NCBI RefSeq assembly: GCF_000143415.4
Contig: NW_003314340.1
Span: 490,161-554,160, forward strand
Source of the DNA: Selaginella moellendorffii
Taxonomy: Eukaryota; Plantae; Lycopodiophyta
Direction: 5' to 3'
DNA: 64,000 nt
Shown: one piece after another, positions 15,315 through 55,569 of the stretch
How positions within the stretch are numbered: the stretch's first letter is position 1
Layout: the number at the start of each line of letters is the position of its first letter
The notes under the pieces: generated by a model
Told to the model about the DNA's origin: nothing
What the model saw: the letters and a program-made list of their open reading frames with translations, nothing else
Databases searched by the model: none
Position numbers and translations under genes: made by a program

Positions 15315-18300
15315 ATGGCAGCGGGATTTGTCTTGACGCCCCACAAGCTCTCGATGTGCGTGCTTCTCCAGCTCTACGCGGCGCCGCCCGCGCTCACGCC
15401 TCCATTCCCTCTGCCGGCGGCGGTGCGGCATCAGCTGGCGCTCTTCCTGCTCGGATTGGCCAAGGTAAGCACTGCGATCCAAATCGAGAATGCGGCAATC
15501 CTAGACGCAGGCCTGCGATGGATTCCTGGAGCCGACGCTCGAGGACCTGGGAATGCAGCTCAAGGAGTGCCTTGGCAGCATTGGCGAGGTGATTGCCGAG
15601 CAGCTGGCGAGTCGATTGCTGGGATTTTCATCGCCGGAGGACTTGTTTACCTTTGTTGTGCTGGGACTGAGAGGTAAGCTATTTGTATGCAAAGTTCTTG
15701 CGGTTTAAATAGAGATGTTCCAGAGATTGTTGTCCCGGCTCCATACACAGTTCCTGAGCGCGGTGGTGGCAACGAAGATTCATTGCTGGTAGAACACAAT
15801 AGCCCGCTGGGACAGTTCTTGCGAAGATGCATCTTGTCATTCAACATTCTATCCTTCGAGGTATGTTCTTTTCTCTTTTTTTACTATAGAGTTAGATGGA
15901 TCTTCACTCGGTTGATTTTCTTACTGTAGATCTAGTTGGATCTTACGCTGACTGCTTTTCTTTTTTTTTTCGTGTTTCCAGGGAACGTGCCGGCTTCTAG
16001 CTGAGCTTGATGCATATCGTCGGCCGGCTTTAAGTATTGGTGATGGAAACATAGTTGCAAAAGATTCCTTGTCTTGCCAGCAAGCAGAAGGTGATGATGA
16101 TGAAGACGAAGAAGAAGATCGGCTAGAAGACGATGAAGACGAAAATGTCATCGCCTCCGTGACACCCGTTCACGGCAGGGAAAGACATGGAAATGGTCGG
16201 CGGGCATTCGGAGTTCCATTGATTCCGACTGAAGGTAAGGTCAATGGATCTTTTTGTCCCGGCTAACTTGAGCGACTGCAGGAAGTGAAGAGCTGGAACT
16301 GCAAGAGTTCACGGACATGCAGGAGCTCGAAGGTTTTGGTGCAAACCATGTGGGAAACGGTGGAGGTGTTCGAGACGGTGGGTTTGCATTTGCATTTGGT
16401 GATGCTGCAAGCAGGGGCGAGCATGCAACACAGGGTAGTTTTCTGCGGACATATGGTCAGGTTGAAGCTTTCATGAAAGACCAAGCCATACTTATAGCCA
16501 AGTAAGTTTTCAAGAGTCCTATTGGGTTTTTAGTGGTTCGCTTACTTCCTTTCTTAGAGAACTTGGAACAACGAACAAAGTAGATCTGGACACTAAGCTC
16601 AATCTTATAGAAAACTTGGCTCCAGAGATGCACCGGGTACGCGTCGCTTTACTGCCGTTGACAGGTTTTGTAAAACGTGTTGAGCAGGTCCACTATCTTC
16701 AGTATCTTAACTCTATTCATCATGGAGACTATCCAGCTGCTATGAGCAGACTCCATCAGTACTTTGATTATAGGTAGGGCCTGCGACGTGTTTCACTTGA
16801 TCTTAATCTTAATATTCTTTTATTTTAGTGCGGGACGAGGAAACATCGCACCCGGCATCGACGCAAGTGTCGGAAGGTTCCAAGCTGGCCTTCTCACTCT
16901 TGGATCTATGCACGCACACTTTGGTCACGTCACTCAAGCGTTACAGGCAAGTGTTTGTTAAGAGTCCTGATTGTATTGAACTGTGTTTTGTTTGCATGCA
17001 GGCTCTCAGTGAAACTGTTCGCATCGCTCAACAGGTACAAGTTTTCTGCTCTCACAATCCATCTAACTTTCTCCATGCAGAACAACGATGATACTTGTCT
17101 TGCGCATTCTTTGGCTGCTTTGTGCCACTTACTATCGGAAGTGGGTGTTGCTGCCGAAGTTACAAAGGCCGGTGCAATCGGCGACTTTGATCGTAGTATT
17201 GGTCCACAGCTCGCTGCTCAGCAGCATTTGCTTCTTTCTTTAAACCGGTGCTTAAAACGAGCATTAGAGCTGAAACTTCCCAATCTAGTTGCATTCAGTC
17301 GCTTGGCTTTAGCGAAGTTTGATCTCCAGGTAATCAGAATATCAGGTTTAGTACATATTTATTGATGATTGAAGATGATATGCTGCGTAGCATGTTCGCA
17401 GGTTGCCTCTGATCGGAGGGCTGAGAAGCTCCGAACAACTTGGGACATCGCCAGTTGATGTTTGCAAGGTAATACTTTGGATTAGTTATATTAGCTAACG
17501 TGTTTCTTCCAGACTCTCAGAATCAGTCCATATCTTCTAGGCGACCTGGTGCACAGTATGTCGTCATCCGGGTCGCAGCGGATCACTTCTGGGGCTTTCG
17601 GTCAAGCACCTGGAATGCCCGGAAACTCTCAAACAGGAAGGCTGGGACCTTTGTCAGAATCACTGTTGAAGCTGGCTGGATCCTCGTATCTTCTTCGATC
17701 TTGTTCGTGGGAGTTGTATGGCAGGTATGTCGTTTGTTTTGTTTGTCTGTACATCGTTCTGAAACTCTTTTGTACAAGCGATCCGATGATGCGCGCGAGT
17801 ACCTTGGTTCATGCGTACTGCTACTCCAAATCCGCAAGGTTTGGCCTTGGATTACGCTTGAGTGGAAATGTTTTTCCAACGCTTGTTCTGTCCAGTGCAG
17901 ATGATTTATCGGTAGCCTATGTAAAGCTTGCCCATCATTTAGCAGCTCATAAGGGATATAGAGGTATCATTAAGCTTTCACCTTGGCCTTTTACGTAAAA
18001 GTTTTGCTGTTTCAGTCGCTTTAACTGCGCTGGAGCAAGCAATGAAGAAGTTTCCACTTCATGCTAGATCTTCTTTGCGATCAGTTCAACTTCAATTTAT
18101 TCATAGTCAGGCTATTAACCGGTATGTTTAGAATAAACCTTGTTTGTGATGTTTCTGACTCATCAAACCTGCAGTGGAAATACCAGGCTTGCATGGGTAG
18201 CATGCTCCGAGCTTGCGGCAATGGCTTCGCCAGTCCTAGGCGTTGACATGGAACTAAAGTTTGAAGCTAGTTATCGCCACGCACTAACGCTTCTGGCGTG

Positions 18301-37808: not shown

Positions 37809-40243
37809 ATGGCGCACAGGCATCGCGTCGCGAGGCTGCTGCGATGGAAATGGCGGCGCGCTGGACCTGCGATGGCTCTTGTAAGTCACTGCCAGGAATC
37901 CTCCAGCTCGTGGATTGGATTGCGGGAGTTTTGGCTCGGGAGGATTGGCCACGGATCGCGATTTCCATCTCTTTCTCCATCGAGGGGCTATTCCATGGCT
38001 TCTGCGTCCACACAACCGCAAGAGAGTGAGAATGTGATGGCCGTGGACATGGGGCTAAACATTCTCAAGGACGGCGTGGATGTCAAGAGCGATGCTTTCC
38101 ACGCAAATCGCAAGGCTATGGAAAGACTCGTCTCCGAGCTTCGTGAGAATGTCCGCAAGGTGCTGCCGATCTTTCTCTCGACGTTCTCTACGTTTTCATT
38201 GTTTTTTCTTTGTTGAAAGGTTTGCAATGACAGGGACCCGAAGACTCTCAGCCGCCATAGAGCAAGAAACAAGCTCCTGCCGCGAGAAAGAATCGACCAA
38301 CTTTTGGATGCTGGATCGCCTTTCATCGAATTGTCCCAGGTGATAACAGTGTCACAGTTTTACTTCCTTTTCCTCTGATAAAATGTGACAAACTCTTGTG
38401 AGCAGCTAGCGGGATTCGACATGTATGACGAGCAAGTTCCTTCTGGAGGGATTGTCACAGGGATTGGATCGATCCACGGCCGGCTGTGTATGCTCGTCGC
38501 CAATGATCCAACAGTAAAAGGTGGAACTTACTATCCTATCACGGTAAAGAAGCACCTTCGAGCTCAAGAGATCGCAGCTCAATGCAGCCTCCCTTGTATA
38601 TATCTTGTGGACAGTGGAGGCGCAAATCTCCCCCGGCAAGCCGACGTTTTCCCGGATAGAGATCACTTTGGCAGGATTTTCTACAACCAAGCGCGGATGT
38701 CCGAGGCTGGAATACCTCAGATAGCGCTTGTTCTGGGCTCGTGTACAGCAGGTGGTGCTTACGTTCCAGCCATGGCCGATGAGAGTGTCATTGTGAAAGA
38801 AAATGGGACGATTTTTCTTGCTGGACCTCCCCTTGTCAAGGTACGGCTTCGTTCCTTTGTGGCTTCGTGGCTTTGTTCTCGTGCTGCTTTTGTTTTTGTT
38901 TTTCTGGCTTTTCCGTTTTCGTTTCTTTAACTTTCTTTCTGTGTGCTTTCTCAGGCTGCGACCGGAGAGGAAGTCACTGCTGAAAATCTCGGAGGAGCCG
39001 ATTTGCACTGTAAAGTATCAGGAGTAGCCGACCACTTTGCGAAAGGTAAGGATCTTTCAGTTCGAATGTTTGCTCACAGTTTTTATGTTCACAGATGAGC
39101 TGCATGCTCTTGGAATTGGTCGAAAGATTGTCCGGAATTTACATCTTGCTGCGTCAACTCCCAACGTAAAGCTGGACGAAGACGCTGTCGTAAGGGAACC
39201 ATTGTATGATCCTTCTGAATTGCATGGCATCATTCCAGAGGATTTGAGGCAGTCTTATGATATTCGCTCCGTCATTGCTCGAATTGTGGACGGAAGTGAG
39301 TTTCACGAGTTCAAGAAGCTATATGGAAGTGTAAGCTTTTTCGAATTTGTCTTCCTTCAAAACTTACTGATCTCAAATCTTCCAGACGCTGGTCACAGGA
39401 TTTGCAAAGATTCATGGACAGTCCGTTGGGATTCTGGGAAACAATGGAATTCTTTTCACTGAGTCAGCCTTGAAAGGTGCTCACTTCATTCAGCTCTGTG
39501 CTCAACGCCACATTCCGCTACTATTTCTTCAGAATATCACTGGCTTCATGGTTCGTATCAACGAACTTTATCCTTCTATCCATTTCATGTGATTTTATTT
39601 ATGATAATTTTAGGTGGGATCCAAATCCGAGGCTAGTGGTATTGCCAAAGCGGGTGCCAAAATGGTCATGGCTGTTGCTTGTGCCAAGGTTGCTTTGAAA
39701 AACTTTAGATAATAGTTTCTTACCTGTTTGAAACTTTTCTAGGTGCCCAAGATTACTGTGATAGTCGGAGGGAGCTACGGCGCCGGGAACTATGGAATGT
39801 GCGGACGTGCTTACAGTCCCAACTTCCTTTTTCTGTGGCCAAACGCTAGGATCTCGGTCATGGGAGGCAGCCAGGTATGTTTCTTCATATAGTTTTACTT
39901 GAGTCAGCGAGAGCTTTTTTCCGATCAGGCAGCAGGAGTTCTCGTGCAGATTGAGAAGGAGCAACGCTCCAGGAAAGGAAATCCAGTAAGTGTTTCTCGT
40001 GAACATTTCTTCTCTTGTATGATGGTGGCTCTGTTGCAGTGGAGCAAGGAAGAGGAGGAGCTGTTTAAATCCAAGACTGTAGAGTCTTATGAGCGAGAGG
40101 CCAATCCTTATTATGCTACTGCCAGGCTTTGGGACGATGGCGTGATTGATCCTGCGGACACGAGACAAGTTGTAGGACTGTGTCTCAAGGCCGCATCTCA
40201 AAGCTCTCCACAAACTTCGAAGTACGGAGTTTTTCGGATGTAA
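37809..40243 (+). CDS. MCCB: Methylcrotonyl-CoA carboxylase beta subunit, mitochondrial, multi-exon
   Basis: Motifs [50 protein letters not shown] and [18 protein letters not shown]. Ends YGVFRM*. Confidence 0.95.
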
Positions 40244-41339
40244 CTACAGAAGATTGGATCTAACAAGATCTGCAAGATGAATACTATTTTATAGTCCTCA
40301 ACTTTACTTATTCATTCTTATTTAATCAGGGTACAAAAATGCAAGTGAAGTCTGAGAACTTTACTTTGTTCCACGTTTAGCTAAGTCACTCGCTATCATG
40401 TTTCTAAGCCTAACATATCTAAAATAGTATAAATAGTAGTATAATTATAATAAGGCTTACTGTTAATATCTAGAGAAGTGAAGACAATAATTACTACTAA
40501 AATACTAAAGCAATAGAAAAGAAAAGATAAATTTATATGAATACTCTGACTTTAGAAATTAATTAAGTTTATATCTCAAGTTAATTTAGAAAGTTAAACT
40601 CTTCATACTAATTCTAAATACTCATTCATGTGCATTTTTTATTTTGAGTTTAAATCTGATGAATTAAGGTTTAAGGTTTAATTCCCACAACAATCAGTAG
40701 TGGTGAATATACTCTCAATAAATACAAAGAGATGACAAATACATAATATTATCCCCCTAATGTTGAGAATCAAGCAACAACTAAAGTGGTGTAAGACCAT
40801 GCTTAAGTAGATAATATTGATGGAGATTCACAACAAACTTAAAAGCATAAGCATGATGAGAAACAAACTCTTAAGTATGATTGTTAGGAAAATATCCAAG
40901 TTAATCAATTAAATAATAGAGTTTGGCAGCAACCTTAAATTTCTACTCTGCAATAATAACCATTGGTGGTGATTGGAATATAAACAAAATCAAAAAGGGC
41001 ATAATAAAGTTTTAATGAAGAAAAATGAAACATTGTATGAATGGAGAAAGATTAAGTCAATAAATGATTTAGATATGTGAGAAAGCAAAAAGAAAGAACA
41101 CAATCATTGATAATCTAACTTGCTACAAGGGCATATAGTCTTTCAATAATAATGAAGAAGTTAAAGGCTTAAATTGGTAAGAATAATGAATAGTACAATA
41201 ATGAGAGAAAGGTGACGGTGAACATCTATCATCTCATGAAGATAGAACTCATAAAGAGAATTTAAAGGAGTAGCATGAGCAATAATAAAATTATTTATAA
41301 GATCTAGTATTAAAGGAAAATAAATATAACCAATGAGGA

Positions 41340-42100
41340 TTAATGTTATAGTTGAAAAAGAATGAAAAGTGATGTTTTAAAGAATACTAAGAATTATTAT
41401 ATACAAACTTAATAAAAAAGATTAACTCAATCATTTTGTTAATGGGAAATAAAATATTAAAGATATTGCTCTTTTATCTTCTATCTAGTCTTCTCCAATC
41501 TAAGGTTTAGATTAACTCAATCTAAACCTTGAAAGCTTTAGAAATTTATTTATATGGATTTCCTTACTAATCTTCTACCTTCTTAAAGATTTGATAACAT
41601 CTTTGTTGTGGTCAATTAGTTTTCCAAAATGGCACGTTTCTTGGCATGTCAAAAGAATATTAATGAAAAACAGTTGGTTAAGCTTATTTATAAAAAGATT
41701 TTCCATCTTTATGGACTACCAAATGATATTTTTAATGATTAAAGGCTTTAATTTGTTTTCACATTTGGTGCTAGTTTATTTCCTTTTTTGTCAAAAACAA
41801 ATTGTTAACTTCTCTTAGACTAATGGGTAATGAACAGGTATTATTTAAAATATTTGAGTAGTATCTTGATGTTTTATTTCCCATCAATAACATAATTGAA
41901 TTGATTTCCTTTGTTGTATTCAGTTTACTTATAATAATTTTTAGCATTTTTCAACACATCACTCTCCATTTTTTGTGTACTATGGCTTTAATCCTCATTA
42001 GTCATATTATCCTTGTTAGCTAGAAAAACACTACAAGAAAATATTTGCCAAACTTCTTGAACAAATAGATGGGTCGCTTAAACTATTTCAATTTGCGACT
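41340..42100 (+). mobile_element. Highly decayed Ty3/gypsy LTR-retrotransposon integrase remnant
   Basis: Broken peptides MDFLTNL, FDNIFVVVN*FSKMARF and FTYNN...HFSTHHSPFFVYYGFNP in strongly AT-shifted DNA. Confidence 0.7.
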
Positions 42101-42499
42101 TAAAGAGTGATCAAGAGGAGTAGAGAGCTATACAAAGAAATTAATTTAAAAATGAAAGAAATCAAGGAGAGTTTTATGTTGGAAGTCAATCACAAAGTTT
42201 TTAGGTGAAGGTGTGAGATAATTATATATCAAGTAAGAGCATCATCTTTCCCATTTGTTTTTCTTGAATGATGTATAATTGTAAATTAAAAACATGATAG
42301 TGATTATAACTGTCAAGCCTGTCACTAATTGAAAATATGTGTCAAGGACAAATATTGAAGATCTTTGGATCATTATATTATAAGATATAAATCTCTAAGT
42401 CCTAAAGTAGAGTTGAAAGTGTACTATGTGATAGCTGAAATGAAAGTTCAACAAGTGTTACAAATTTGGACTAAAATGTTTGATTTGAAAAGTTGAGAG

Positions 42500-43565
42500 T
42501 AAGAGTGAAACTCTCAAAGAAGTGTTTAAGGAAAAAGGATGAAGTGATTGATAGGTGATTCTCTAGGAAGGGATAAAAAAAAAGATTGACACGTGGCAAA
42601 TGTTGAGATTGAGTTTAAGATCAAGATTGAATTTGATATGGAGTTCAAGATCAGATTCAACTCTATTTATTGGCTAAAGGAATTACTCCACATATTGAGA
42701 TTAATATTTGACATTTTAATTTGCTCTAGCTAGGCTTGAGAATAAAGTTTTTTGGAGAACCATAGCTCTCAATTTCTATTCATGAAAGTGTGAACTTAAA
42801 GAAAAGCATGGTAAATTGTAAAAAAAAACTTGAGACACAATATATAAGAGTTAAAATATAGAGGGAAATGGCTCATTAATAAGTGTATATATACTTGTTT
42901 CAATCTGTTAAAAGTCTTGGAATACTTAGGTAAACATAAGTACTATTAGCTTGAATGACATCCCAGAAGGTCCGAATTCAAAAATTTAAATTTGGTATAA
43001 AAAAGGTTTTATATCTAATTCATCATTTAAATACAACCTTAACTCTTTAGGTTATTTCATCATTTAATAAAAGCAGCAAAGTTACTATTTCAAGGATATA
43101 TATTTGACCTCCTATAGTCATCAATTACATAAGAATAATTTTATGACTAATTTATTGTTTAGGAGTTCTTGTCCTTCTTGTCCTTCTTTTAAGTGATCCT
43201 AACTATACTTATTTACTATAATTATATTAAAATCAATTTATTTAATCAAACTCTTATATATATCACATCCTTAAGCTCTCTAATGAAAACTTTTTATGAT
43301 TCCCAAGATCTTAAAATTATTCCTTTTTTAACCTTTTTTTTAAGTTCATATATGAATTAAAGTGGAGAGCTATGTCCTCCTGACATGCTACTCCTTGAAT
43401 ATACCCCCACTCTTGGGACCTTCAAATGTCAATATCAAGTGGAGTTATATTTAACTATCAATAAAAGTTAGATTAAAGAATAACTTCAATACTAAGTTGT
43501 AAAATTTTTCATTATACTTTAGTTACTCAATCATGCCTTTAACCACTTAAAGAATTTTCACTCAC
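42500..43565. repeat. Degenerate inverted repeat (arms ~42500-42852 and ~43250-43565)
   Basis: Reverse-complement anchors tatataagagtt/aactcttatata, catagctctc...gaacttaa/ttaagttc...gagagctatg and gagtgaaa/tttcactc. Confidence 0.55.
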
Positions 43566-45227
43566 AACCTCTATAAGTACTTATCCTGACTTAAAGAACT
43601 TATTAGCCCTTATAAGTAATCTCAAATCCATGTTAACGAAGCATTTGGTTTGTGTTTAATCTCACTTTAGACACTTAAAGGTATCATCAAAGTGTTAACC
43701 TTTTACATTAAAGCCCTCTTTTCTATTAATCTTATACATTAAGGCCATATTTTCTAGTCTTACTAGGGTTGACCTAGACCCCACTTTTGCCTCATTGAGA
43801 TAATGGTTGCTTTTACTGCTGGTGAAATATTAGTGCCTAAAACTTATACATAAGTGTAACACATTCTATTTCTCCTCCTTTAAAAGGTTTTAAGAATGCA
43901 TAGTGATAGTATATTTAAATCTAATTCCATCATCATAGGGTTATACTCACCTCCCTTTAAAGATGGCAATTAATCATTCACTTGTACCTCACATACCCTA
44001 CAAGACGAAGGACATACTCATAGATATAATATTTATAATTTTGATTTTTAAGGTAAAAAATATACCTTGTCCAAGGGTATTATATTTTAAATAGCCATTA
44101 ATCAATATGAATTAAACCTGTGTTATTTGCTCTAATATCATATCTTTTCTTTTAAGCCAAATGGAAAAAAACAGCAATTATTTAATGAGAGTGGCTATTT
44201 TATTTATATCCTCTAAAATTCCAATAACAATATATTCAAATTTCATCTCATAAACACATACTCCAAGAAATTAAATTCTAACTTGCAGCAATAAAAGATG
44301 CATAGCAAAAAAATGGCACTCACTGCTGGTTTCTTCCATTCCTGCTGGGGGGAAACTTGTGACCCTCCACACTATCCTAATTATACTTGTTTAGATGCTT
44401 TGAGCGACAAAGAAATACACGCAACTATGTGACGCTTGCATGGGGAGGCCTATTTTGCTCCACCACCTACTCTGCAACACTGATGGTGCAAGGGATGGGC
44501 ACGCCATGCTGCTTCATTACTAGCCAGCTACCCCAAGATTGGAAGAAGTATTTTGCTGGGAAATTGGAGATCCAGGGCCAGCCGATCAGGTCTATCGGGT
44601 TGCTGATGATGTGTCACATGCCCCATATCTTCCCTTCAAGGCTGACTCCGTGAAAAGAATCCCAACCTCACTTCATTCGGAGCTCTGTGCTCAACTCCTG
44701 GTTCGTATTATCCATCACTTGTGATTTGGTTTGCCCATTGGAAGAATGATCAATAGCAAATTTCCAAGAGTCAAGCCAAGAACTAGAGTCTTTTCTCTCA
44801 CCGAGAGTCTGAGCTTCTTGGGCTGCATGATTAAAATTTTCTCTTTCTCGTGAGTTAAAGGCTATAACTGATAAAGGAGCCCCAGCTCCTCAAGTATGGA
44901 GGAGAGGAAAGTCAAAGTTTTGCCCATTCTGGCTCTCCGATGTAAATGAAAAGCTCAATCAATCGAAAGATCTCTCCACTGCTTTTTTTCTGCTGAAGGG
45001 AGTAGTGCCAAACTTTTTCCAGGATGGATTTGTCTCAGCAAAAGAAGATGAATCAACTGCGCCTGAATTGGACTGTGACACGAAGATGGCAACGTGCTTT
45101 TAAGCCAATACGAGAGGATGATCTTTCTATAAAGAAAGTAGAAAGTCAAGCTGCGCAAAAGGAAGGAAGAAAGTCGTGAGATCCAGCAACAAGCAGTGAA
45201 GATCAACAGCAAAAGAAACTAAAGAAC

Positions 45228-46298
45228 TTAACACGAGAACCACACAAGCTCCACTTGTCCTCGAGCTCCGCTCAAAACATCAGAGGCATCAGGAGCTGCC
45301 CTCAACACATCCGGCGCATCAACCTCTGACCACCTCCTGGAATCAACTCCATAGTGCACAATGCGCGACTTGGCCACCAGCCATACACTGTCCTTCCCAT
45401 CGGTGCATGTCAACTTGTCCCGCAGTGACGGATCACGAAGCTCCTCGTCAGAGTACGACACAGCCTCCCACTTCCCTCCCCGCGCCTCAGCGACAACCAG
45501 CCCCATCTGTTCCATGTCTTCGCTCACCAGCAGAAGTCGGTCCCGATCCAGCTGAAGGAAGCACCAGCTATAAAGTCCCAGCTCCAACTCGTTGGCATCA
45601 ACCTGGAAAACCCGCCAGGAACCATCCCACACGTTGTATCTCGCGATCCTCGAGGCCCTCGGGCAAAACTGTACCACCTCACCGTGATCCAGCATCGGAG
45701 AGAAGGCCTTCCCTTTGATAGTAGCCGATACATCTGGGCAGTCTTTGCGCCTGGACCACTCGCCACAAGCCGAGTCGTAGATGTGCATCGAGAGCGAGGG
45801 CCTGTCGAACCTAGGGGGCCTGTTGAAGCTAGCAATGCAAAACTCTGGCGTCGATCGATCCCTCTCGCGGCTGTACACCACCATGCTAGTTCCATTGCTG
45901 ACCACCGGCGGCAAAGGGACTCTCACCGGTGAGGAGTTGAGATCACTGTAGCGCCACACGAAGATGGAGTTGGGGCGCTGGAACTCCACAACGGTAGCCA
46001 GGCAGAGCAAGCCGGCGTCGCTGCTGACAATCCTCATGCCCTCCGGGAGCGTCTGGAAGTGACGCCACTGGCCGCTGCAAGGGGAGTTCTCCACCGGCTT
46101 GACGAAGAGGGACGAGCACCAGGCAATGCGGAGGCAGAGGAGAGGGATGCAGGCGTGGGAGCGCGCGTACCATTTACGGAAGCTGGGATCGTCAATTGTT
46201 CGTTGCCAATCACGGCACACGCACCTCGCCTGGCACCGATCGATTGCAGAAAGCCTGAAGAAGACGAGCTCCACACATTCACCGCTGCCTCCTTGCAT
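45228..46298 (-). CDS. F-box protein with F-box-associated/kelch-like beta domain, intronless
   Basis: ECVELVFFRLSAIDRCQARCVCRDWQRTIDDPSF (F-box), VSSDAGLLCL and IYDSACGEW. First ATG at 46298. Confidence 0.85.
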   Translation of the reverse strand: MQGGSGECVELVFFRLSAIDRCQARCVCRDWQRTIDDPSFRKWYARSHACIPLLCLRIAWCSSLFVKPVENSPCSGQWRHFQTLPEGMRIVSSDAGLLCLATVVEFQRPNSIFVWRYSDLNSSPVRVPLPPVVSNGTSMVVYSRERDRSTPEFCIASFNRPPRFDRPSLSMHIYDSACGEWSRRKDCPDVSATIKGKAFSPMLDHGEVVQFCPRASRIARYNVWDGSWRVFQVDANELELGLYSWCFLQLDRDRLLLVSEDMEQMGLVVAEARGGKWEAVSYSDEELRDPSLRDKLTCTDGKDSVWLVAKSRIVHYGVDSRRWSEVDAPDVLRAAPDASDVLSGARGQVELVWFSC

Positions 46299-46340
46299 CC
46301 TGTGTGCCCAAGTTTGCTCTAGGTGTTTCGTCAATAGCTT

Positions 46341-46530
46341 GCCTGTTGGGATTCTGGTAAACAATGGAATTATTTCCACGGAATCAGCCTTGGAAGGTGC
46401 TCACTTCATTCAGCTCTGCAACGCCACTGTTTCTCCTTGAAAAAAAATTCTCACCGAGATGGCGTTTGAACATTTCGATCCTGCGGACACCAGACACGTT
46501 TTAGGTCCGTGTCTCAAGGCTGTGTCTAAA
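46341..46530 (+). pseudogene. Collapsed partial copy of MCCB
   Basis: 46341-46427 matches MCCB 39421-39511 (GILGNNG...GAHFIQLC). 46476-46530 matches 40147-40200 (DPADTR..VGLCLKA). Confidence 0.88.
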
Positions 46531-47079
46531 CGAGTACAATTATTACAAGTACACTTGTTGACACCACGTTTATTTTTATTTTGCATATGCAAAACTTATA
46601 AATATTATAATCACAGATTATAAAGAATCAAGTATGGCATATTTATAGAGAGGTCATGGCATGCAATTTGTAAAAAAGTGAGTGTTACTGTGGTAAATTT
46701 CACTCACAATATAGTGTCTATGTGGCAGTTTTCTATTGGTTCAACATTAAATGTCATTTGGATGCCTCATGGATGATGGCCGATGTCCCCATAATATGAA
46801 CAATGTGCTAGACATAGATGCCACATATCATCAAATTTAACCCCATGACATAGGGATTTATCAAGTCATCCTTGCTTTAGCACTTTGCTTTAGTGCTTTG
46901 TTATTCGGCATGTTTCTTGGTAGCAAATATGGAAGGTAACTTGATTTGCTAATGATTAGTTTCAAATGTTTTTGTGGGTAGTGTTGGAAGTGCCTTTGAT
47001 TTATTACTAGATTGCTCTCTATAAACTTCGAAGTTCCTATAATTCCCTCCCTAAATTTGTGTCACTAAAACTTTTTCTT

Positions 47080-48740
47080 CTAGGTTTACTGGAAGACGTG
47101 GAGGAAGAGGAGGTGGATGGCCTTCCATCCAATTTTAATGATTCAAACTGTGGTTCAGGTGTGGATAATGACAACAATGCACTCTTAGAGGTTTGCTTAG
47201 TTTCCAACCTCTTAGATTTATAATTTGCACATTTCTAGGCCTTCTATAATTTTTTGCGATCGAGAGGATTCGGTAGTCCAGCTGCATTTGGCACTTGGAT
47301 ACACCTGAAGATCCTCAAGACTAAGACTACTGCTTACTTTAGCTATCTTAGAATTTCCAAGCCAACACTGTACAAATACATGCGGCTTGTTAATCCAAAT
47401 TGAAGAGGTGTATATTACAGAGCACCACCCGAAGAGGTACTTCATCACATTCAGACTAACAATGCTATGAATCAAGGTGACACAAATTGGGGGATTATCA
47501 ATTCCCAATTTCGCTATCGAACTAGAGGATACCAGTTTAGCCAATGCCAAATTCGTGAGGCATTAACCACTCATGATCTAACTAGGCCAGAACAAAGGCA
47601 CATGACAAAAATTCGATGATGGATTTACAGGAATAAGGACTTTGCCATATGGATTGTGAGTATTCTTTCATTTCTGCTTTTTTGTTAGCACATGTGGTAA
47701 CATGTTTATTGTAGCATATTGCAAACTTGTAAGCTATGGTTTCTATGTATATGCTATTATTTGTGGGGCAACTCATTATATTGTAGCTTGCAAGCTAGCT
47801 ACCTCCAAAGAATCCAATGCAATATTCAACATATATGCATAAGTTGTTCGTCAATTTGGAAGGCCCAAGTGCATCCGGAGCGACAATGCTCCAAAGAACA
47901 ATGAGGTTGAAAGGGACATGGTCCATTGTTAAGGTCCTGTAGCTAAGAGTTTCATACGTGGGACATCAACACGTAACTAAGTACTCGCAACATTAGAGTT
48001 TTTCTAAATAAGGATTAAATCAAATTTATTTTATAGAGCATTTATGGAGAGAGCTTTTTGAGCGCATGATTTGGTTTTATAAACACCTTTTTGAGTCCAT
48101 GGAAGATATAAGAATTCTCGATGTATCTAATCCATGGCACAACCAAAGTCTACGTTGTGTCTTTGCTCTGTACCTCATGAAGGATATTTCACACTGGGTT
48201 GCAACCTAAAACCTCTATGAGGTCTATTCATATTGATATGGTGATTATTTCAGACCATCTTATGTTCTTACAAACTTATTTCAACCAATGGAACAAGAGT
48301 TTGGGTAAGAATTTTGGTAATGTTACAGAATTCTTTATAAATTGTGCTTTTGTAGGATTATGCCAACTGTTGGTGGAAAAGATATTGAAGACATACTTGG
48401 ACTATTTCTCTCCAATGTCAAAGGTGCAACTCTATTAAAGGTAATCTTTAGAGCAAGAATAGAATAATTTCTTTTAATCTATTTCGTTATGCTTGGCTAC
48501 TTTACAAACTCTTAGCACTGTTCGAAACCAAGCATTTTTTATGTATCGGGAGGGACTCAACTTGGATGAGTAATATTTACTTCATTTGGATTTAACAATG
48601 GAGTGTGTAATGGTTGATGTTGCGAGTGTAGATTTACCACTTTACATTGAGGGTGCCTTGCCTATAGCAACACCAGTGACGTGATGAGCTTTGGAAAAAT
48701 TATACTTGGCCATACTTGGAGAAAATTGAGTGTTCTTTAG
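47080..48740 (+). pseudogene. Spliced integrase-core (IS3-like) DDE transposase with stops/frameshifts
   Basis: RTRGYQFSQCQIREAL...KIR*WIY; HMD|SYCKLVSYGFYVYAIICGA; FGRPKCIRSDNAPKN; SFIRGTSTRN*|IEHLWRELF...FYKHLFESMED..ILDVSN. Confidence 0.8.
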
Positions 48741-49309
48741 TGTACATTTCAAATTTAAATTCAATTCTTGATTTCCTCAATTTTAGGGTTCCCATGTTTG
48801 GGATTAGGGTTTACACTAAGTCCCACCCATATTAAATGTGCCTTGGATATAGGGCAATTTTATTTTATGACATGATCTTGTCGATGGTTCATTCATTCTT
48901 CCAATCGATTTATGTCATCTAACTGGAGGCAAGGCTTCTAGTGCACACTCCCCCGATCGCAGGACCACCACCCAAGCAAGAGCGTCATAACTGTGATGGT
49001 GGGTAACTTCTCCTCGATCAAGTTTGCATAACCAATTCCTTGTGGTTTCCATGCTCAAAGCAAGAACACCACACACCTCAACAGCAATAGACACTATGCA
49101 GAAAACACCTCGTGAGCATGCACCCAAGCACTCGATTTTTTACAATCGATACAACCAATAGTCCCACAAGACACACACCAGCCACTTGATTTTCCAAGCT
49201 TTGCAGCAGGGACATCAACTCCAATAGCATCCTATCCATAGCTCCCAAGTGCATTTAAGCAAGCAGAGTGCCACTTAATATTGCATACACTGCAACATAT
49301 GTGGAACCT

Positions 49310-49604
49310 CTAGATGCTTTATTTCGTTAAAGTGGGACTTATTCAGTAAAGTGGGACATTAATTAGCATGTATCCACATGCCATTTCCTAGTACTTAATT
49401 AATATTTATTAATATTTCTATCAGTTTTTTAATTTATTTTTTATATTTCACAATATTATAACACAAAATCATATGAAAAGTTTTTAATTTATAAATTATA
49501 AAGTTAAAACTTCAATTTTTTATTGTTGTTATAAAAATGGCATGTGGCCACACACCATAAGTGGGATAATGAAAAGTCCCACTTTAATGAAATAAAGCAT
49601 CTAG
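49310..49604. mobile_element. ~295-bp MITE nested in the large element
   Basis: TIR ctagatgctttatttcgttaaagtgggactt / aagtcccactttaatgaaataaagcatctag (1 mismatch in 31). Subterminal ccacatgccattt/aaatggcatgtgg. AT-rich core. The TSD reads as TA or CTAG. Confidence 0.88.
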
Positions 49605-49656
49605 CATGTTTCATTTTCCTCGCCTTCCTTGGAAAGCAGCAGCCCGAGCGTCCGAA

Positions 49657-52600
49657 ATGAGCAAATTCGGACACCTCATGCCCATGGTGTTGTCCAATCT
49701 AGAATGCTACCACCAACACCAACTACAAGATATGCTCATGAAAGCCCATATAGTGCCACTACTACCAGCCTACAACTCCACTAGCCGCTATAACTCTTGT
49801 AACTCCATTTACCAGTACAAGTGCCAATATTTGGCCATCTACCTCCCGAAGCAACAAGTGGTCTAGCTCGGTAAGTTTTTCATTTGTACCTATCTTTTTT
49901 CTATGTGTTTTTCTACATAGGGTGAGTTGACAATACCACCACACTAGTGAGTTCATAGTTCCCATCAGCATTCCACAACTACTCCCAAGGATTGACATCG
50001 TCATCTAGTGGAGCTTCAACATCTAGATATATTCAAGTTAACCCTCAAGGCGGGCTGCCATGTGAGCCACAGATATAACATGACCCCATGCACTCTTCAA
50101 ATTTTTATTTTTTTTGGATTTGTTTGATTCATTTTCATTTCACTATGCTAGACTCTCTCACCGTTTGTGGCTACAGTGCACATCTATGCCAATAACAATT
50201 GGCAATTCTCGATTTTAAATGGAAGATTGAAGCTAAAAAATAAAATACATGAATATTAAAAGAGATGATCATTTTTAATTACACAAAACACTTGGATAAT
50301 GTAAAGTATAAAATATCTTGTTGTCGTGGACCATCGTGGCAACCAATCCAAAGTCATTGGTGGGATGTCATCTACGACACCCTTGGTCCCCCAGCCGTTC
50401 ACTACAGTCCTTGTCACCAAGTGGATTGCAATCCCGAAGACTTGGTATGTACACTTGTATGGGCGGAAAAGAGAGCCATCTGTGAAGGTGACAGAACTTG
50501 ATGAGCTGGCAATGGCCCTCCCAGAGTGTCTCATATGGGGTGGCTTATACTCCAATATTCCTTTCTAGCTCGGTACGGCCTAACATGCGATTCTACTATC
50601 ACTCCAAGCCTCAAGAATCCAACCTTCATCCATGACCAACCCATGAGCATTTGTCCAGTGTGCAAGGCAGTCCAATGGTGGTAAGGCCCATGTTGAGTTT
50701 GCAAAATTTGGCCTCAGCTCTATCCGGCCTTGCTATTGACCTCCTCAAACATGATAGGGAGCTATAGCAAACAAGGCCAATGGCAACTGGGCAACAGTAA
50801 TATACCTATACAATGTTATGGAGCATCTTACTAACAAACATTAGCTAAGTTATCAAAAGTAGGCCCAAGCACTTGAGGAGAAAGATATTCGTGAATGTAA
50901 GTCATTATTTTTTTTAAGTTCCTTCTTCACAAATATATGTTGTGGCCTTTTCAGTTATAGTTGCTATAAATACCTTGATTACAAATGATGATCCCTTGGT
51001 GATAGAGCCATTTCTCTCAAGGCCAGCCATGCAGGAACCAAACTAAGATGAGAATAATGAAGAAGACTCTACGGATGAAGAGGATATTTTTCCATTACCG
51101 GAAGAAACTCTCCCCACACAAGACAATATGGACATCACCGGAGTCAAAAAATAAGGTGATTGTGAGGATGAACCACACCAAGGATCTCCAGAGACATCCT
51201 TGTCACCAGAGATAGTGGCTCTAAGCCATATAACTGGTAAGAAGTATAAACATAAATGAATATTTCCTTCACTTTCTAATTTTTGAGTGTAAATAGGCCA
51301 ATAGTATTATATGATAGTGATAGTGGAGGCCTTGAAGACCATGGTGTGTCTCCACCCCCCTTTTTAGAGGGAAGTAGCTCCACTCTACTTACTCTTATGG
51401 AGTTACTTGACATCTTTTCTACAATAGAGTAAGATAATTGAAAATTGTACCATTCGAAATTGAACTAACGTTTGCATGTAGATTGTTAGAGCGTCAACAA
51501 CGATGGATTGATGCCACCAATACATTTAATAAAGTTATTCAATTAACCACTTAGGATAGTGCTAACTTCATCACACTACAGCATGAGGAGTTTTTTGCCT
51601 TACAAGATGCCCCCATAGCCCTTGAGATGAGGGCACAAGGGGATGCTGAAGTTCTTTCATAAATGGAATGGCTGAAACACAAACTTCTTGGTTGCTTTAG
51701 CATAGAGAGCACAAATGACGAGGACATGCTAAACACTGTTGCTACACACCTTGAGTTCCATTGAGCTAGTGGTGAAATATTTCTTTGCTTTTCAGCCAAG
51801 CCATGCTTCATTGACAAGATTGAGAGAGTGTTCTCTTTAAGCTTGGCCTTTCAAAAGCACAATACGAGGGTGTGTTTTGTGATAACACAATCCAACAGCT
51901 CCTTGCTAAAGGAAGCATCAACGTGCCTCCTTCAATTATTGAGTCCACAATAACATGGTTCATTAAGAATAGGTAAGTATATCTATTTTTTAGCACTTAG
52001 TACCATCTTATTGTTTTGTGCAAGGACCTACGTAGGAATTGGGCGGCTACACAATAATTAAGAGAACTATTTGATATTGCTGAAACACTGTATTGTAAGT
52101 TCTCCCGTTTTTACATCGAGAAGGCCATGTTTCGGCCATACAGACTTGCTCGTACACGTTTGAGGCCGTCTCACATTCTGGATTGCCTATGAATTGGAGT
52201 TCCCTCACTTGTCCTTCCAAATTACACTAAACAATGAATTCAGTTGTTTCCAATTCACTTTCAATACTAATCTCCGCACATCGAATTACAAAGTGGTCTA
52301 TGCGTATGAGATTGGAGGAGCTTTGGTGTGGGAGGATGCCACAATAGATGCGGGTGGGCCACATGCAAAAGCCATTAGAGAGGCTGTTCACCAAATTCTA
52401 GGATCGGTAAGTGTAATTTTCACTTAGTTCACTAGAGTAACTTTGTGTTACAGACACATGGACTATTTGTGCTTAGGGAAGGAGCCACGTATTAGCATCC
52501 CAAGATGCCAGTGCATTCTAGGACGTTGCGACAAGAAAAGTGGGATGTGGTAAGTTAAGTTTAAAGCACAAGTTTTATATGCTCCTTATTTCTATACGCA

Positions 52601-53526
52601 CAGACTATCTTTGTGGGCTGGTTGCTATTCCAAACATTTGAATCTAATGCATAGGTATCTCGCAGGTGTACAATTGCAACATTGGCAATTACAGTCGGAG
52701 AGGTTGCAAACGAGAATGACCGACAACTTGCCCGAGGAGGACTATATGAGATGGACCTCAAGGCATGCGTGTTGCATATCTGAAATGCACTCAACCAATT
52801 GCAAAGTGAATCAAGCCTAAAGGAGGAGGGCGATTAGCGCAAGTGTGTGAATTCCATCTTAGAGAACCCTACAATTACCGACTACAATGCAATGCTTGAG
52901 TCTAAACTCACCAAACTTAGTGAAGGTTATAAATAGGCTGTGGAGGCATGTGTGGTTGCAATGGTCTAGCGTTATTTATTCATTGAGCCAAATGTAGTGG
53001 GAGACTTACTTTGAGATGGCTTCCAACATTCAATGCACATGGAAGCTTGTCAGAGGCTATACAAGAGTCCAACATTGCTAGGTAAGCTTTCACTCATTGG
53101 GACAGATGCTTTATTATAGGTCCTCCAGGTAAGGATGATCATTCCTCCCACGGAGTTCATCAAATGCCTGATGTTTGATCAAGACTTTGGAGAGAACTTT
53201 CGCAGCTGGATTATGGACATCATCTAAGGTAACTATTTACTTTCACAAACAACTAAAACTCTTGTATGTTTGAACATTTTATAAATATGAACCCGAAAGA
53301 GTTACCCAAGTTCCATCACTTTGTGGTTGATTCTCCATAGTTCCAACTGGGAGAGCCTATTTGGATCTAAGTTGAGAGATAAGGTACATCATTTACTCGA
53401 TTTCCTAGGTTTTCCACATGCACACGAAAAGTTTTCTTCCCTTTAACATACCTGTCAATGGAGTGGACCAAACACAAGATTCACCAGGCACTCCAAAATC
53501 CAAAGGGCTTGTATGGATTGGGCTAA
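49657..53526 (+). pseudogene. Spliced HECT-domain E3 ubiquitin ligase gene of the transposon, decayed
   Basis: WEDATIDAGGP (52329-52360); FGENFRSWIMDI..MNPKELPKFHHFV; C-terminus FPRFSTCTRKVFFPLTYLSMEWTKHKIHQALQNPKGLYGLG* (53401-53526) containing the catalytic-type Cys. The 5' boundary is uncertain. Confidence 0.75.
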
Positions 53527-55569
53527 TGTTGTGGAAGTATTATAATCAAGACACTTTCACAATAAAAATAGATAATTGTCTTGAAGTATGTTTCACACTT
53601 TGAAAGACAGTTCATTTGCAAAGTTAAAGGTAAGAATATTCAAAATATTCCATAAATGCCCATTATAGGCACTTGTGGCCCTTGGTACCCTTTTGGCTTA
53701 TGCTTGCCTCACCAAGGATAATCACTATAGCTTCTAAAGCAACTCCCAATTTAAGATTTGGGTCAAAACTATCAAACTTAGGTGTTATATGATCCCCATC
53801 CTCGCTTGAGGAACTCTTAACCTATTTCATGGTAGAACCAAAATCACCTTCTGGGTTTGTGAACTCGTCCTTGCTTACATCTTGAGCAGTAACATATCCC
53901 TCACTGTCACTTTTTTCAGCAGAACCTTTCCCCTCGGTGATTGGTATAACATTAGAAGTAGTCTTGGGCTACCTTGTCAGAGGGATTGTCGAGCCTTGAG
54001 AGGAGGAGGCATCATATAAAATCTTTAGTCCTCTCCCCTATTGGATCCATTGTTGTGCCTCAAAGAAGTTATAGAATCCTTTTCAGTTTGCCATGTTAGG
54101 AGGAAACCTAGAAACCTCAAATATTGCAAAAGGGTTAGAGCATATAGGAAATTGTCACAAATCTACTCTTACCAAAATGAGCATGAGCTTCCAATCCCTG
54201 AAAACTCTAGTTCTTCAGCCGTAGCATACATTAGATAATTTTGCCCCATGCTTAGAAACCCTTTTTACAAATTTCAAAATTTGAAACGGTTATAATTGGA
54301 AAATGTTGAAAGTGTCTATTGTTATTGCTCTTCATGTTACTACATACAATTGCAACTTCCATATTCTCAAATCTCCTTCAGCATGCTCCTTTTGAGAGAA
54401 CTCCAAGTCTAAACATCAACACTATACACCTTTGTGTAGTACACAATTGAAGTATAAGCCCCACCAATTCATGGAATTGGTTAAACTTCAACCTACTTTT
54501 GAGTCATATGCAAATCTTCTAAGCATCATGGTACAAAATTAAAGCATTGAGAGAGCTACATTGGAAATCAATGGCAACAAAGGATAAACTCAATGGGATG
54601 CATTAGAGACATGACTCCAGACAGTATATATTTATGGCTTTGCAATGGGGCTAGATGGAGTTCACTTACACTTGCTATGAACACTATGTTAAAAGAGGTG
54701 TGCCAAAAAAGGATAATTCAGTTCTTTTACCATAAGTCCCAAGAGCAAGAAGTGAGAACATAGTGCTCTAGATAAGATAGTATGGTATGCAATTTGATTG
54801 ATTGTCCATTTGGTTTGCAACATTAACAACTTGCTAGAATGCATGGGATGAATGGGTCTATAGGCCATGAATGGCTCCATTCTATATATAGCACGGGTTA
54901 TTGCTATGGGCATGATGCCCCATCCGGGGCATAAGGATTGGATATTTGTAAAATATTCTATACCTATGTTTTTTTCACACTCATAATACACGTGGACCAA
55001 TAGCAGCCATACACATGGTGTGAGTGAAATCCACTGCTGTAAAATCCACCCTTTTACGAATTGCACACCATATTATAGCTCCCCAACAGGGGAAGTGTAC
55101 TAATATGCTAGAGAATTCAATTATATTACAAGATAAATTCATTCATTCCTTCGTTCATATTTTATTTGTATGATCTTACAGAGGGATTTAAATAAGCTTT
55201 ACAAATGATTTTCTCCAGTGTTTGGCAGCCAATATCTGTCTCCACCTCTAGTGTTTCTAGTATCACCCAAATCTCTTCCTCTTCCTCACTGTTACCCTTT
55301 GGGTAATGGTTGATGTAGTGGAGCTTTAAGTGTAAATTCAAGTTTGAGGCTCTACTTCCTTTTTCGTCCTGCAACTCTATCCTTCTTTTCTTCGTCATCC
55401 ACTTCATCCGTGTGTGAGCAGCATTTCTTAGGATTGGAATGGAAGAACCTCTCTTCATAAACTCTTCCTTATGTTTGAAACTCCGCACCACTCCAGCTCT
55501 TCCGCGCCATGCAGAAAACATCACATTCTTTAGTGTCGCCTGCAGAATCGCAAGCATCCCATCCATCGC

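Follow-up and report, generated by a model that had tools for sequence, protein, structure and literature searches.

An old, inactivated GingerRoot/IS3EU-type transposon of Selaginella moellendorffii with a putative HECT-domain gene beside its transposase

GingerRoot DNA transposons were described in 2019 from Selaginella lepidophylla and are present in bryophytes and lycophytes (Cerbin, Wai, VanBuren and Jiang; PMC6839031). They measure 3.9-12.9 kb (mean ~8.6-8.9 kb; 221-364 copies), carry terminal inverted repeats (TIRs) of 100-150 bp with TA..TA ends and produce a 6-bp target-site duplication (TSD), and 28% of those in S. lepidophylla show 'Pack'-type acquisition of host genes, with captured fragments of 84-1654 bp (PMC6839031). 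GingerRoot and IS3EU elements form one lineage with a bootstrap value of 99 (Kojima and Bao 2023, PMC10045372). The multi-gene members of IS3EU include fungal elements with TET/JBP and alpha-kinase genes (Kojima 2025, PMC12730594) and the 7.9-kb Styx of Zymoseptoria with four open reading frames (ORFs) (PMC10853768), and the accessory genes described comprise TET/JBP, alpha-kinase, GATA, CCHC and DUF3577 (PMC10045372, PMC12730594, PMC10853768). The stretch analysed here, a 64-kb window of S. moellendorffii (contig NW_003314340.1, positions 490,161 to 554,160), very probably contains an old and inactivated copy (8.4 kb, ~46655-55072) of a multi-copy, cut-and-paste GingerRoot/IS3EU-type transposon, with a transposase gene and a HECT gene. 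This reading of the single copy follows from the significance of its TIRs, the terminus at 55072, the copy number, the likeness to the Pfam family rva_4 and to the S. lepidophylla element SL_GR-020, the size, a collinear chain of HECT matches and the decay.

The first gene, at 46929-48440 on the + strand with both outer limits approximate, is recognisable by homology as a decayed DDE transposase of the IS3EU/GingerRoot lineage. The catalytic triad named in the earlier note on this DNA is confirmed, with D1 in HMD (47646-47654), D2 in RSDN (47876-47887) and E in IEHLW (from 48033), the three motifs being spread over three frames, all on the + strand. Removal of a 59-nt GT..AG intron (47656-47714) joins HMD to SYCKLVSYGFYVYAIICGATHYIVAC, which lines up residue by residue with LWHMDSYDKLAVYGFRFHGIIDGATRFIVAC of SL_GR-020 (supplement of PMC10045372). 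Identity between the two transposase cores is ~47% over ~106 residues by hand count, they have the motifs HMDSY.KL, IIDGAT..IVAC, IFN.YA and IEH.W in common, and SL_GR-020 is, judged by eye, much closer than the animal IS3EU sequences from the same supplement. When stop-free pieces of at least 28 aa on the + strand and at least 40 aa on the - strand were compared with Pfam, only rva_4, a weak rve and weak helix-turn-helix (HTH) matches were found; the piece at 48012-48206 matches rva_4 (PF24764) at E 8.7e-9, past the curated cut-off. In a tblastn comparison, 47708-47977 and 48033-48230 align with P0009, an intact rva_4 protein of soil-metagenome origin. The upstream part at 47335-47616 is an HTH-like region that aligns with the N-terminus of the transposase at a metagenome locus, L002 (E 0.001), and the weak HTH_17 and HTH_22 matches (E 0.09 and 0.18) fall on ...RISKPTLYKYM.... 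The gene is interrupted by at least six in-frame stops (47401, 47617, 47840, 47930, 48207 and 48234) and by a frameshift before HMD. A phmmer search of 1.8 billion representatives with a 65-aa piece of the transposase returned 12 weak matches and no Selaginella copy, and a search with P0009 returned P0009 itself or close kin only.

The earlier label 'IS3EU-like' is well supported by the rva_4 match and by the alignment of the D/D/E motifs with published IS3EU and GingerRoot cores. The competing identity, an integrase of a retrotransposon or a Ginger element, is countered by the same comparisons. The Ginger1, Ginger2 and Ty3/Gypsy integrases share with this transposase the integrase-fold DDE core, and its weak Pfam rve match reaches only E 0.049; rva_4 fits far better, the N-terminus is HTH-like, and neither strand of the element has a Pfam match to an HHCC finger, GPY/F, a chromodomain, reverse transcriptase/RNase H or a long terminal repeat. 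No zinc finger was matched in Pfam upstream of the transposase core either. The missing HHCC finger is a feature in common with IS3EU. The earlier note had also taken the introns as a sign of long residence; the 59-nt intron fits residence in the host, but it gives no date.

The second gene (ORF2) is a multi-exon pseudogene at 49657-53526 on the + strand, from an ATG at 49657 to a stop at 53524, and the GTAAGT donors at 51964 and 52406 fit this gene structure. Both genes lie on the same strand within the TIRs and contain introns, as had been noted earlier. Profile comparison indicates that ORF2 ends in a genuine, very divergent HECT domain (52278-53526), which is broken by seven in-frame stops. 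Four small hidden Markov models (HMMs), covering the start of the N-lobe, the middle of the N-lobe, the hinge and the C-lobe, were built from the HECT gene of L002 and its relatives L014 and L015-L018 and were run over the six-frame translation of the complete window, in which stops were read as X. Their matches at 52278-53466 rank 2nd, 3rd, 1st and 1st, all on the + strand, correctly ordered and confined to a span of 1.2 kb. The best-scoring collinear chain has 16.3 bits, compared with -6.6±2.2 (maximum -2.5) for 31 locally shuffled or reversed windows (z ~10), and hhalign gives P 0.0076 for the C-lobe piece by itself. It is this chain, and not Pfam, that bears out the HECT C-lobe seen earlier.

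The N-lobe start, ...VWEDATIDAGGP, occupies 52278-52405 (HMM match 52278-52370) and is followed by a block in the middle of the N-lobe (52646-52810), a block in the hinge region (52961-53053) and the C-lobe (53284-53526), where the HMM match covers 53284-53466 and the frame continues to the stop at 53524-53526. The C-lobe reads ...KFHHFVVDSPxFQLGEPIWIxVERxGTSFTRFPRFSTCTRKVFFPLTYLSMEWTKHKIHQALQNPKGLYGLG-stop, where x is a stop codon, and the motifs of HECT domains stand in their expected places: D-x-GGP, GF..M, P..STC....FP..Y and the end ...GLYGLG-stop. The putative catalytic Cys (codon 53419-53421, in FPRFSTCTRKVFFPLTY) has the context P-x-x-x-T-C...L-P-x-Y and lies at the canonical distance of 35 residues from the C-terminus. 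Upstream of the HECT domain, the N-terminal 2.6 kb of ORF2 contain no domain recognised by Pfam and resemble none of the upstream portions of the L002-family HECT gene; zinc fingers of the PHD or RING type gave no Pfam match in 49657-52278, a region that is decayed. Two C-lobe candidates that had been picked by eye, 51906-51947 (LKEASTCLLQLLSP) and 54050-54160, do not rise above shuffled sequence, and the region downstream of the gene, 53527-54992, has no match on either strand. The best single match of the N-lobe-start HMM lies elsewhere in the window, at 18130-18231 (+; 7.3 bits, E 0.19); the other three HMMs have no match nearby and it is probably due to chance.

A parallel to this gene pair comes from eukaryotic metagenomes. 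The rva_4 fragment P0003 is found on L002 and on a JGI contig of 31.5 kb, which also carry an ORF with a HECT C-lobe (Pfam HECT, E 1.8e-8) on the same strand as the rva_4 transposase, 4 kb upstream of it. The L002 locus resembles the element in the pairing of these two genes on a common strand, no more than 4 kb apart, and in the equally compact and divergent HECT domain; it differs in its transposase, which is 32-37% identical to that of the window, and in the unlike upstream parts of its HECT gene. The gene from which the HMMs derive (L002/L014/L015) matches PF00632 at E 1.8e-8 and 1.2e-12, and its sole match among PDB sequences at E<=0.01 is the HECT domain of UBE3C. The earlier statement that such transposases often sit beside G2E3-like HECT genes in animals and fungi is unconfirmed; the only PDB match of the intact relative is to UBE3C and not to G2E3. 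Pfam misses the N-lobe even in the intact relative L014. Between L002 and L015, DNA conservation (64-73%) is confined to coding parts and ceases at the stop codon, which suggests that the HECT gene is under selection at these two loci. In L015 (1231-6650 and 11038-20219) and L014 (7676-8824), the HECT gene stands beside host-like genes (ORFs of 323, 307 and 710 codons), and the same surroundings contain an insertion bearing a reverse transcriptase and no rva_4 gene. A search with the L002 C-lobe returned L002 or close kin only, a metagenome scan gave three short loci and a viral scan none, and a HECT gene hinted at weakly by tblastx in L011 received no support from the HMMs.

The ends of the element carry genuine inverted repeats. 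The left TIR (46655-46743, + strand) begins cATGGCATGCAATT and the right TIR (54993-55072, - strand) ends ...AATTGCACACCATA. Gapped local alignment of 46656-46743 with the reverse complement of 55071-54993 scores 65, against a mean of 24 (sd 4, maximum 40) in 500 shuffles, in agreement with the earlier sighting of TIRs, and a repeat search gives a core of 53 nt with 75% identity. The alignable length in this decayed copy, ~80-90 nt, is slightly below the GingerRoot range. The right end is set by other copies of the element: in two DNA runs of the organism, contigs part into mutually unlike sequence exactly past 55072, and one other copy reads GAATTGCACGCCATA and then continues into unrelated sequence. 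The element reads ...CACACCATA at this end and the other copy ...CACGCCATA. As the other copies diverge right after 55072, the right end is placed there, 40 nt short of the border at 55112 proposed earlier, and this terminus together with the symmetry of the TIRs places the start of the left arm at 46655. The ending ...CCATA fits the CCRTA reported for IS3EU (PMC12730594), whose termini are TAYGG..CCRTA and for which a 6-bp TSD is expected.

The left end is less regular. The TATGG from which the earlier note started the element is present at 46633, but the aligned arm starts at 46655/6, 22 nt inward, where it opens with cATGG; the element therefore spans ~46655 (or 46633) to 55072, or 8418 bp from 46655. 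The outlying 8-mer TATGGCAT (46633-46640, + strand) fits the consensus TATGGYGT and has an A at position 7, as does the copy at 46655-46662. Either this is the true end, set apart by an insertion of 22 bp within the terminal repeat, or the 8-mer was duplicated locally. The 6-bp flanks on the left are AGAGGT (for 46655) or ATCAAG (for 46633), and the right flank is TTATAG (55073-55078), a candidate TSD directly past the right end; a possible displaced counterpart, also TTATAG, lies at 46643-46648, 6-7 nt (AGAGGTC) outside the left arm. The presence of TTATAG on both sides is suggestive, yet there is no clean TSD, as had been observed before. Near the right end, a copy of the terminal 14-mer (TATGGTATGCAATT, one mismatch) recurs on the + strand at 54781-54794, oriented as at the left end and 278 nt away from the right one. 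The motif alone recurs there and not the whole TIR, and it is possibly a subterminal transposase-binding site.

The element belongs to a many-copy family. Contigs from three DNA runs of the same organism were compared with 49151-55150 at a likeness of at least 80%, and each run yielded 1167-2153 contig pieces, 80-99% alike (most 80-95%), that together span all of 49151-55072, with ~10-27 distinct contigs per position at the listed variable sites. Within the window the element is present only once, and there are no tandem repeats. At 50205-50345 (~140 nt, inside ORF2), several copies have 33-36 other letters instead, marking a variable or rearranged spot.

The copy in the window is extensively decayed. 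The + strand of 46.6-55.1 kb has no long ORF, and stops (TGA, TAG or TAA) fall within every homologous block of both genes. The element has a CpG observed/expected ratio of 0.35, compared with 0.7-1.0 for most of the other 8-kb bins in the window, and an excess of TpG and CpA; where this copy differs from essentially all others it has T/A in place of C/G at most listed sites. The transition-type stops of both genes are the outcome of methylated-C decay, in line with the CpG-type stops remarked on earlier. A miniature inverted-repeat transposable element (MITE) of 291 bp is nested at 49309-49599, 58 nt upstream of the ORF2 ATG, with an inverted repeat of 97% identity, TIRs of 31-39 nt that start CTAGATGC / CTAGATGCTTTATTTCGTTAAAGTGGGACTT... 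and junctions of TA or CTAG; other copies of the element lack the MITE and read directly from 49308 to 49600. The MITE is extremely abundant, with a word depth in the DNA runs 10-50 times as high as the element's. The element copy has long been dead and matters to the host only through its bulk.

Several observations weigh against the reading as a GingerRoot/IS3EU copy with a HECT gene. No stop-free piece of the window, all of which are decayed and 24-90 aa long, matches the Pfam HECT family (PF00632) at E<=1, and the likeness to the HECT gene of the L002 family is not significant in block-by-block pairwise comparison; the chain alone is significant. The order in L002 is HECT and then transposase, the reverse of that in the element, and the related HECT genes of L014 and L015-L018 have no rva_4 gene within 4.5-10 kb downstream. 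The comparison with other copies covers 49151-55150, the part with ORF2, and the left terminus and TSD are not clean. The failure of single pieces in Pfam, in PDB sequence searches and in the ESM Atlas, where they returned nothing useful, together with the two look-alike C-lobes, might be taken to mean that the HECT likeness arose by chance in non-coding DNA that has decayed. The ranks, common strand and order of four independent HMMs, a chain score far above every shuffled or reversed window, and the placement of the motifs through to the terminal ...GLYGLG-stop make such a coincidence scarcely credible.

If the domain is genuine, its enclosure could still be an accident of nesting, in which a GingerRoot remnant and a separate HECT element or gene came to lie side by side. 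The irregular left end and the internal terminal 14-mer at 54781 speak for such a composite, but other copies give unbroken coverage that starts at 49.6 kb and stops exactly at 55072, among the loose ends and joints listed only those at the MITE borders and at 55072 recur, and single contigs of other copies cross 54781 (54517-55072 and 54288-54852), which makes an accidental neighbourhood very unlikely. A host gene captured passively in the 'Pack' manner, with no role for the element, is likewise improbable, even though GingerRoots are known to acquire fragments of host genes and the HECT relatives in L014 and L015-L018 have no transposase nearby. What would have been captured here is an entire gene of 3.9 kb, complete with ATG and stop, rather than a fragment of the sizes on record, and the domain is too divergent for Pfam, which is not how a conserved host ligase copied recently would look. 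The contigs of other copies cover ORF2 as they do the terminal region, and a HECT gene also accompanies the far-diverged transposase of L002. That association is confirmed in one other, distant family only, and the proposal that IS3EU/GingerRoot elements have long possessed the HECT gene as a working accessory, retained next to the transposase despite deep divergence, here and in an unrelated eukaryote, and redirecting the host ubiquitin system, for example against silencing or repair factors, is put forward here as a tentative possibility.

In active members of the family, the transposase would bind the TATGG-ended TIRs, excise the element and reinsert it with a 6-bp duplication. The Cys of the HECT domain would take ubiquitin from a host E2 and pass it to a host or element protein, and the HECT protein would most likely serve as an accessory factor that aids the element. 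It might, for example, mark the transposase itself for turnover, or a host factor acting in silencing, chromatin or repair. The copy in the window is itself incapable of any of these activities.

Compared with the GingerRoots of S. lepidophylla, the element shares the genus of its host, the type of transposase, a TA ending at the right terminus, long TIRs, a size of ~8.5 kb and the presence of many copies. It differs in its host species, in its somewhat shorter alignable TIRs and in the whole gene ending in a HECT domain that takes up 3.9 kb. Relative to IS3EU, the HECT gene stands in place of the accessory genes described for that group. The GingerRoot paper mentions captured host gene fragments only, and neither HECT, ubiquitin nor a second ORF (PMC6839031); in the searchable literature, Repbase entries being outside the search, no paper treats both IS3EU and HECT and none relevantly links IS3EU with ubiquitin. 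In the supplement of PMC10045372, the oyster transposase IS3EU-1_CGi_2p (Repbase name) is listed second, with another protein first. The earlier note's idea of a plant lineage of IS3EU-type elements holds as to the land-plant host, but that lineage was already named as GingerRoot in 2019 (PMC6839031), the host falls within its known range, and it is the HECT cargo that appears to be unreported for IS3EU/GingerRoot.

Outside the element, an intact-looking F-box ORF of 383 codons lies at 45228-46379 on the - strand and ends ~275 nt from the left end of the element. The two relatives nearest to it, both F-box proteins of S. moellendorffii, are 54-59% identical, and an exact look-up of the protein gave no record. 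Farther out, a 4-kb block at 40001-44000 has 29% G+C, compared with 37-55% in the rest of the window.

Few transposons bring along enzymes that can alter the regulation of their host, and those that do are instructive. Fungal elements offer an example in their TET/JBP dioxygenases, thought to erase silencing marks, and an ULP1 SUMO-protease domain is present in plant KI-MULEs and CACTA elements. The latter resemble the present case in having an enzyme of the ubiquitin/SUMO system as the accessory gene of a TIR transposon family; they belong to other superfamilies, however, and encode a protease that removes the modifier, in contrast to a ligase that would attach ubiquitin. If the HECT gene is what it seems, a DNA transposon family that has retained a ubiquitin ligase would add a new case of the rewriting of host regulation, and we know of no description so far of a class of transposon-encoded E3 ligases. 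The family would also be a natural source of compact, very divergent HECT domains, and annotators would be warned that orphan "HECT-like" or "G2E3-like" models in repeat-rich genomes may be transposon genes. For the GingerRoots themselves, the finding would account for what fills their ~8.5 kb besides the transposase.

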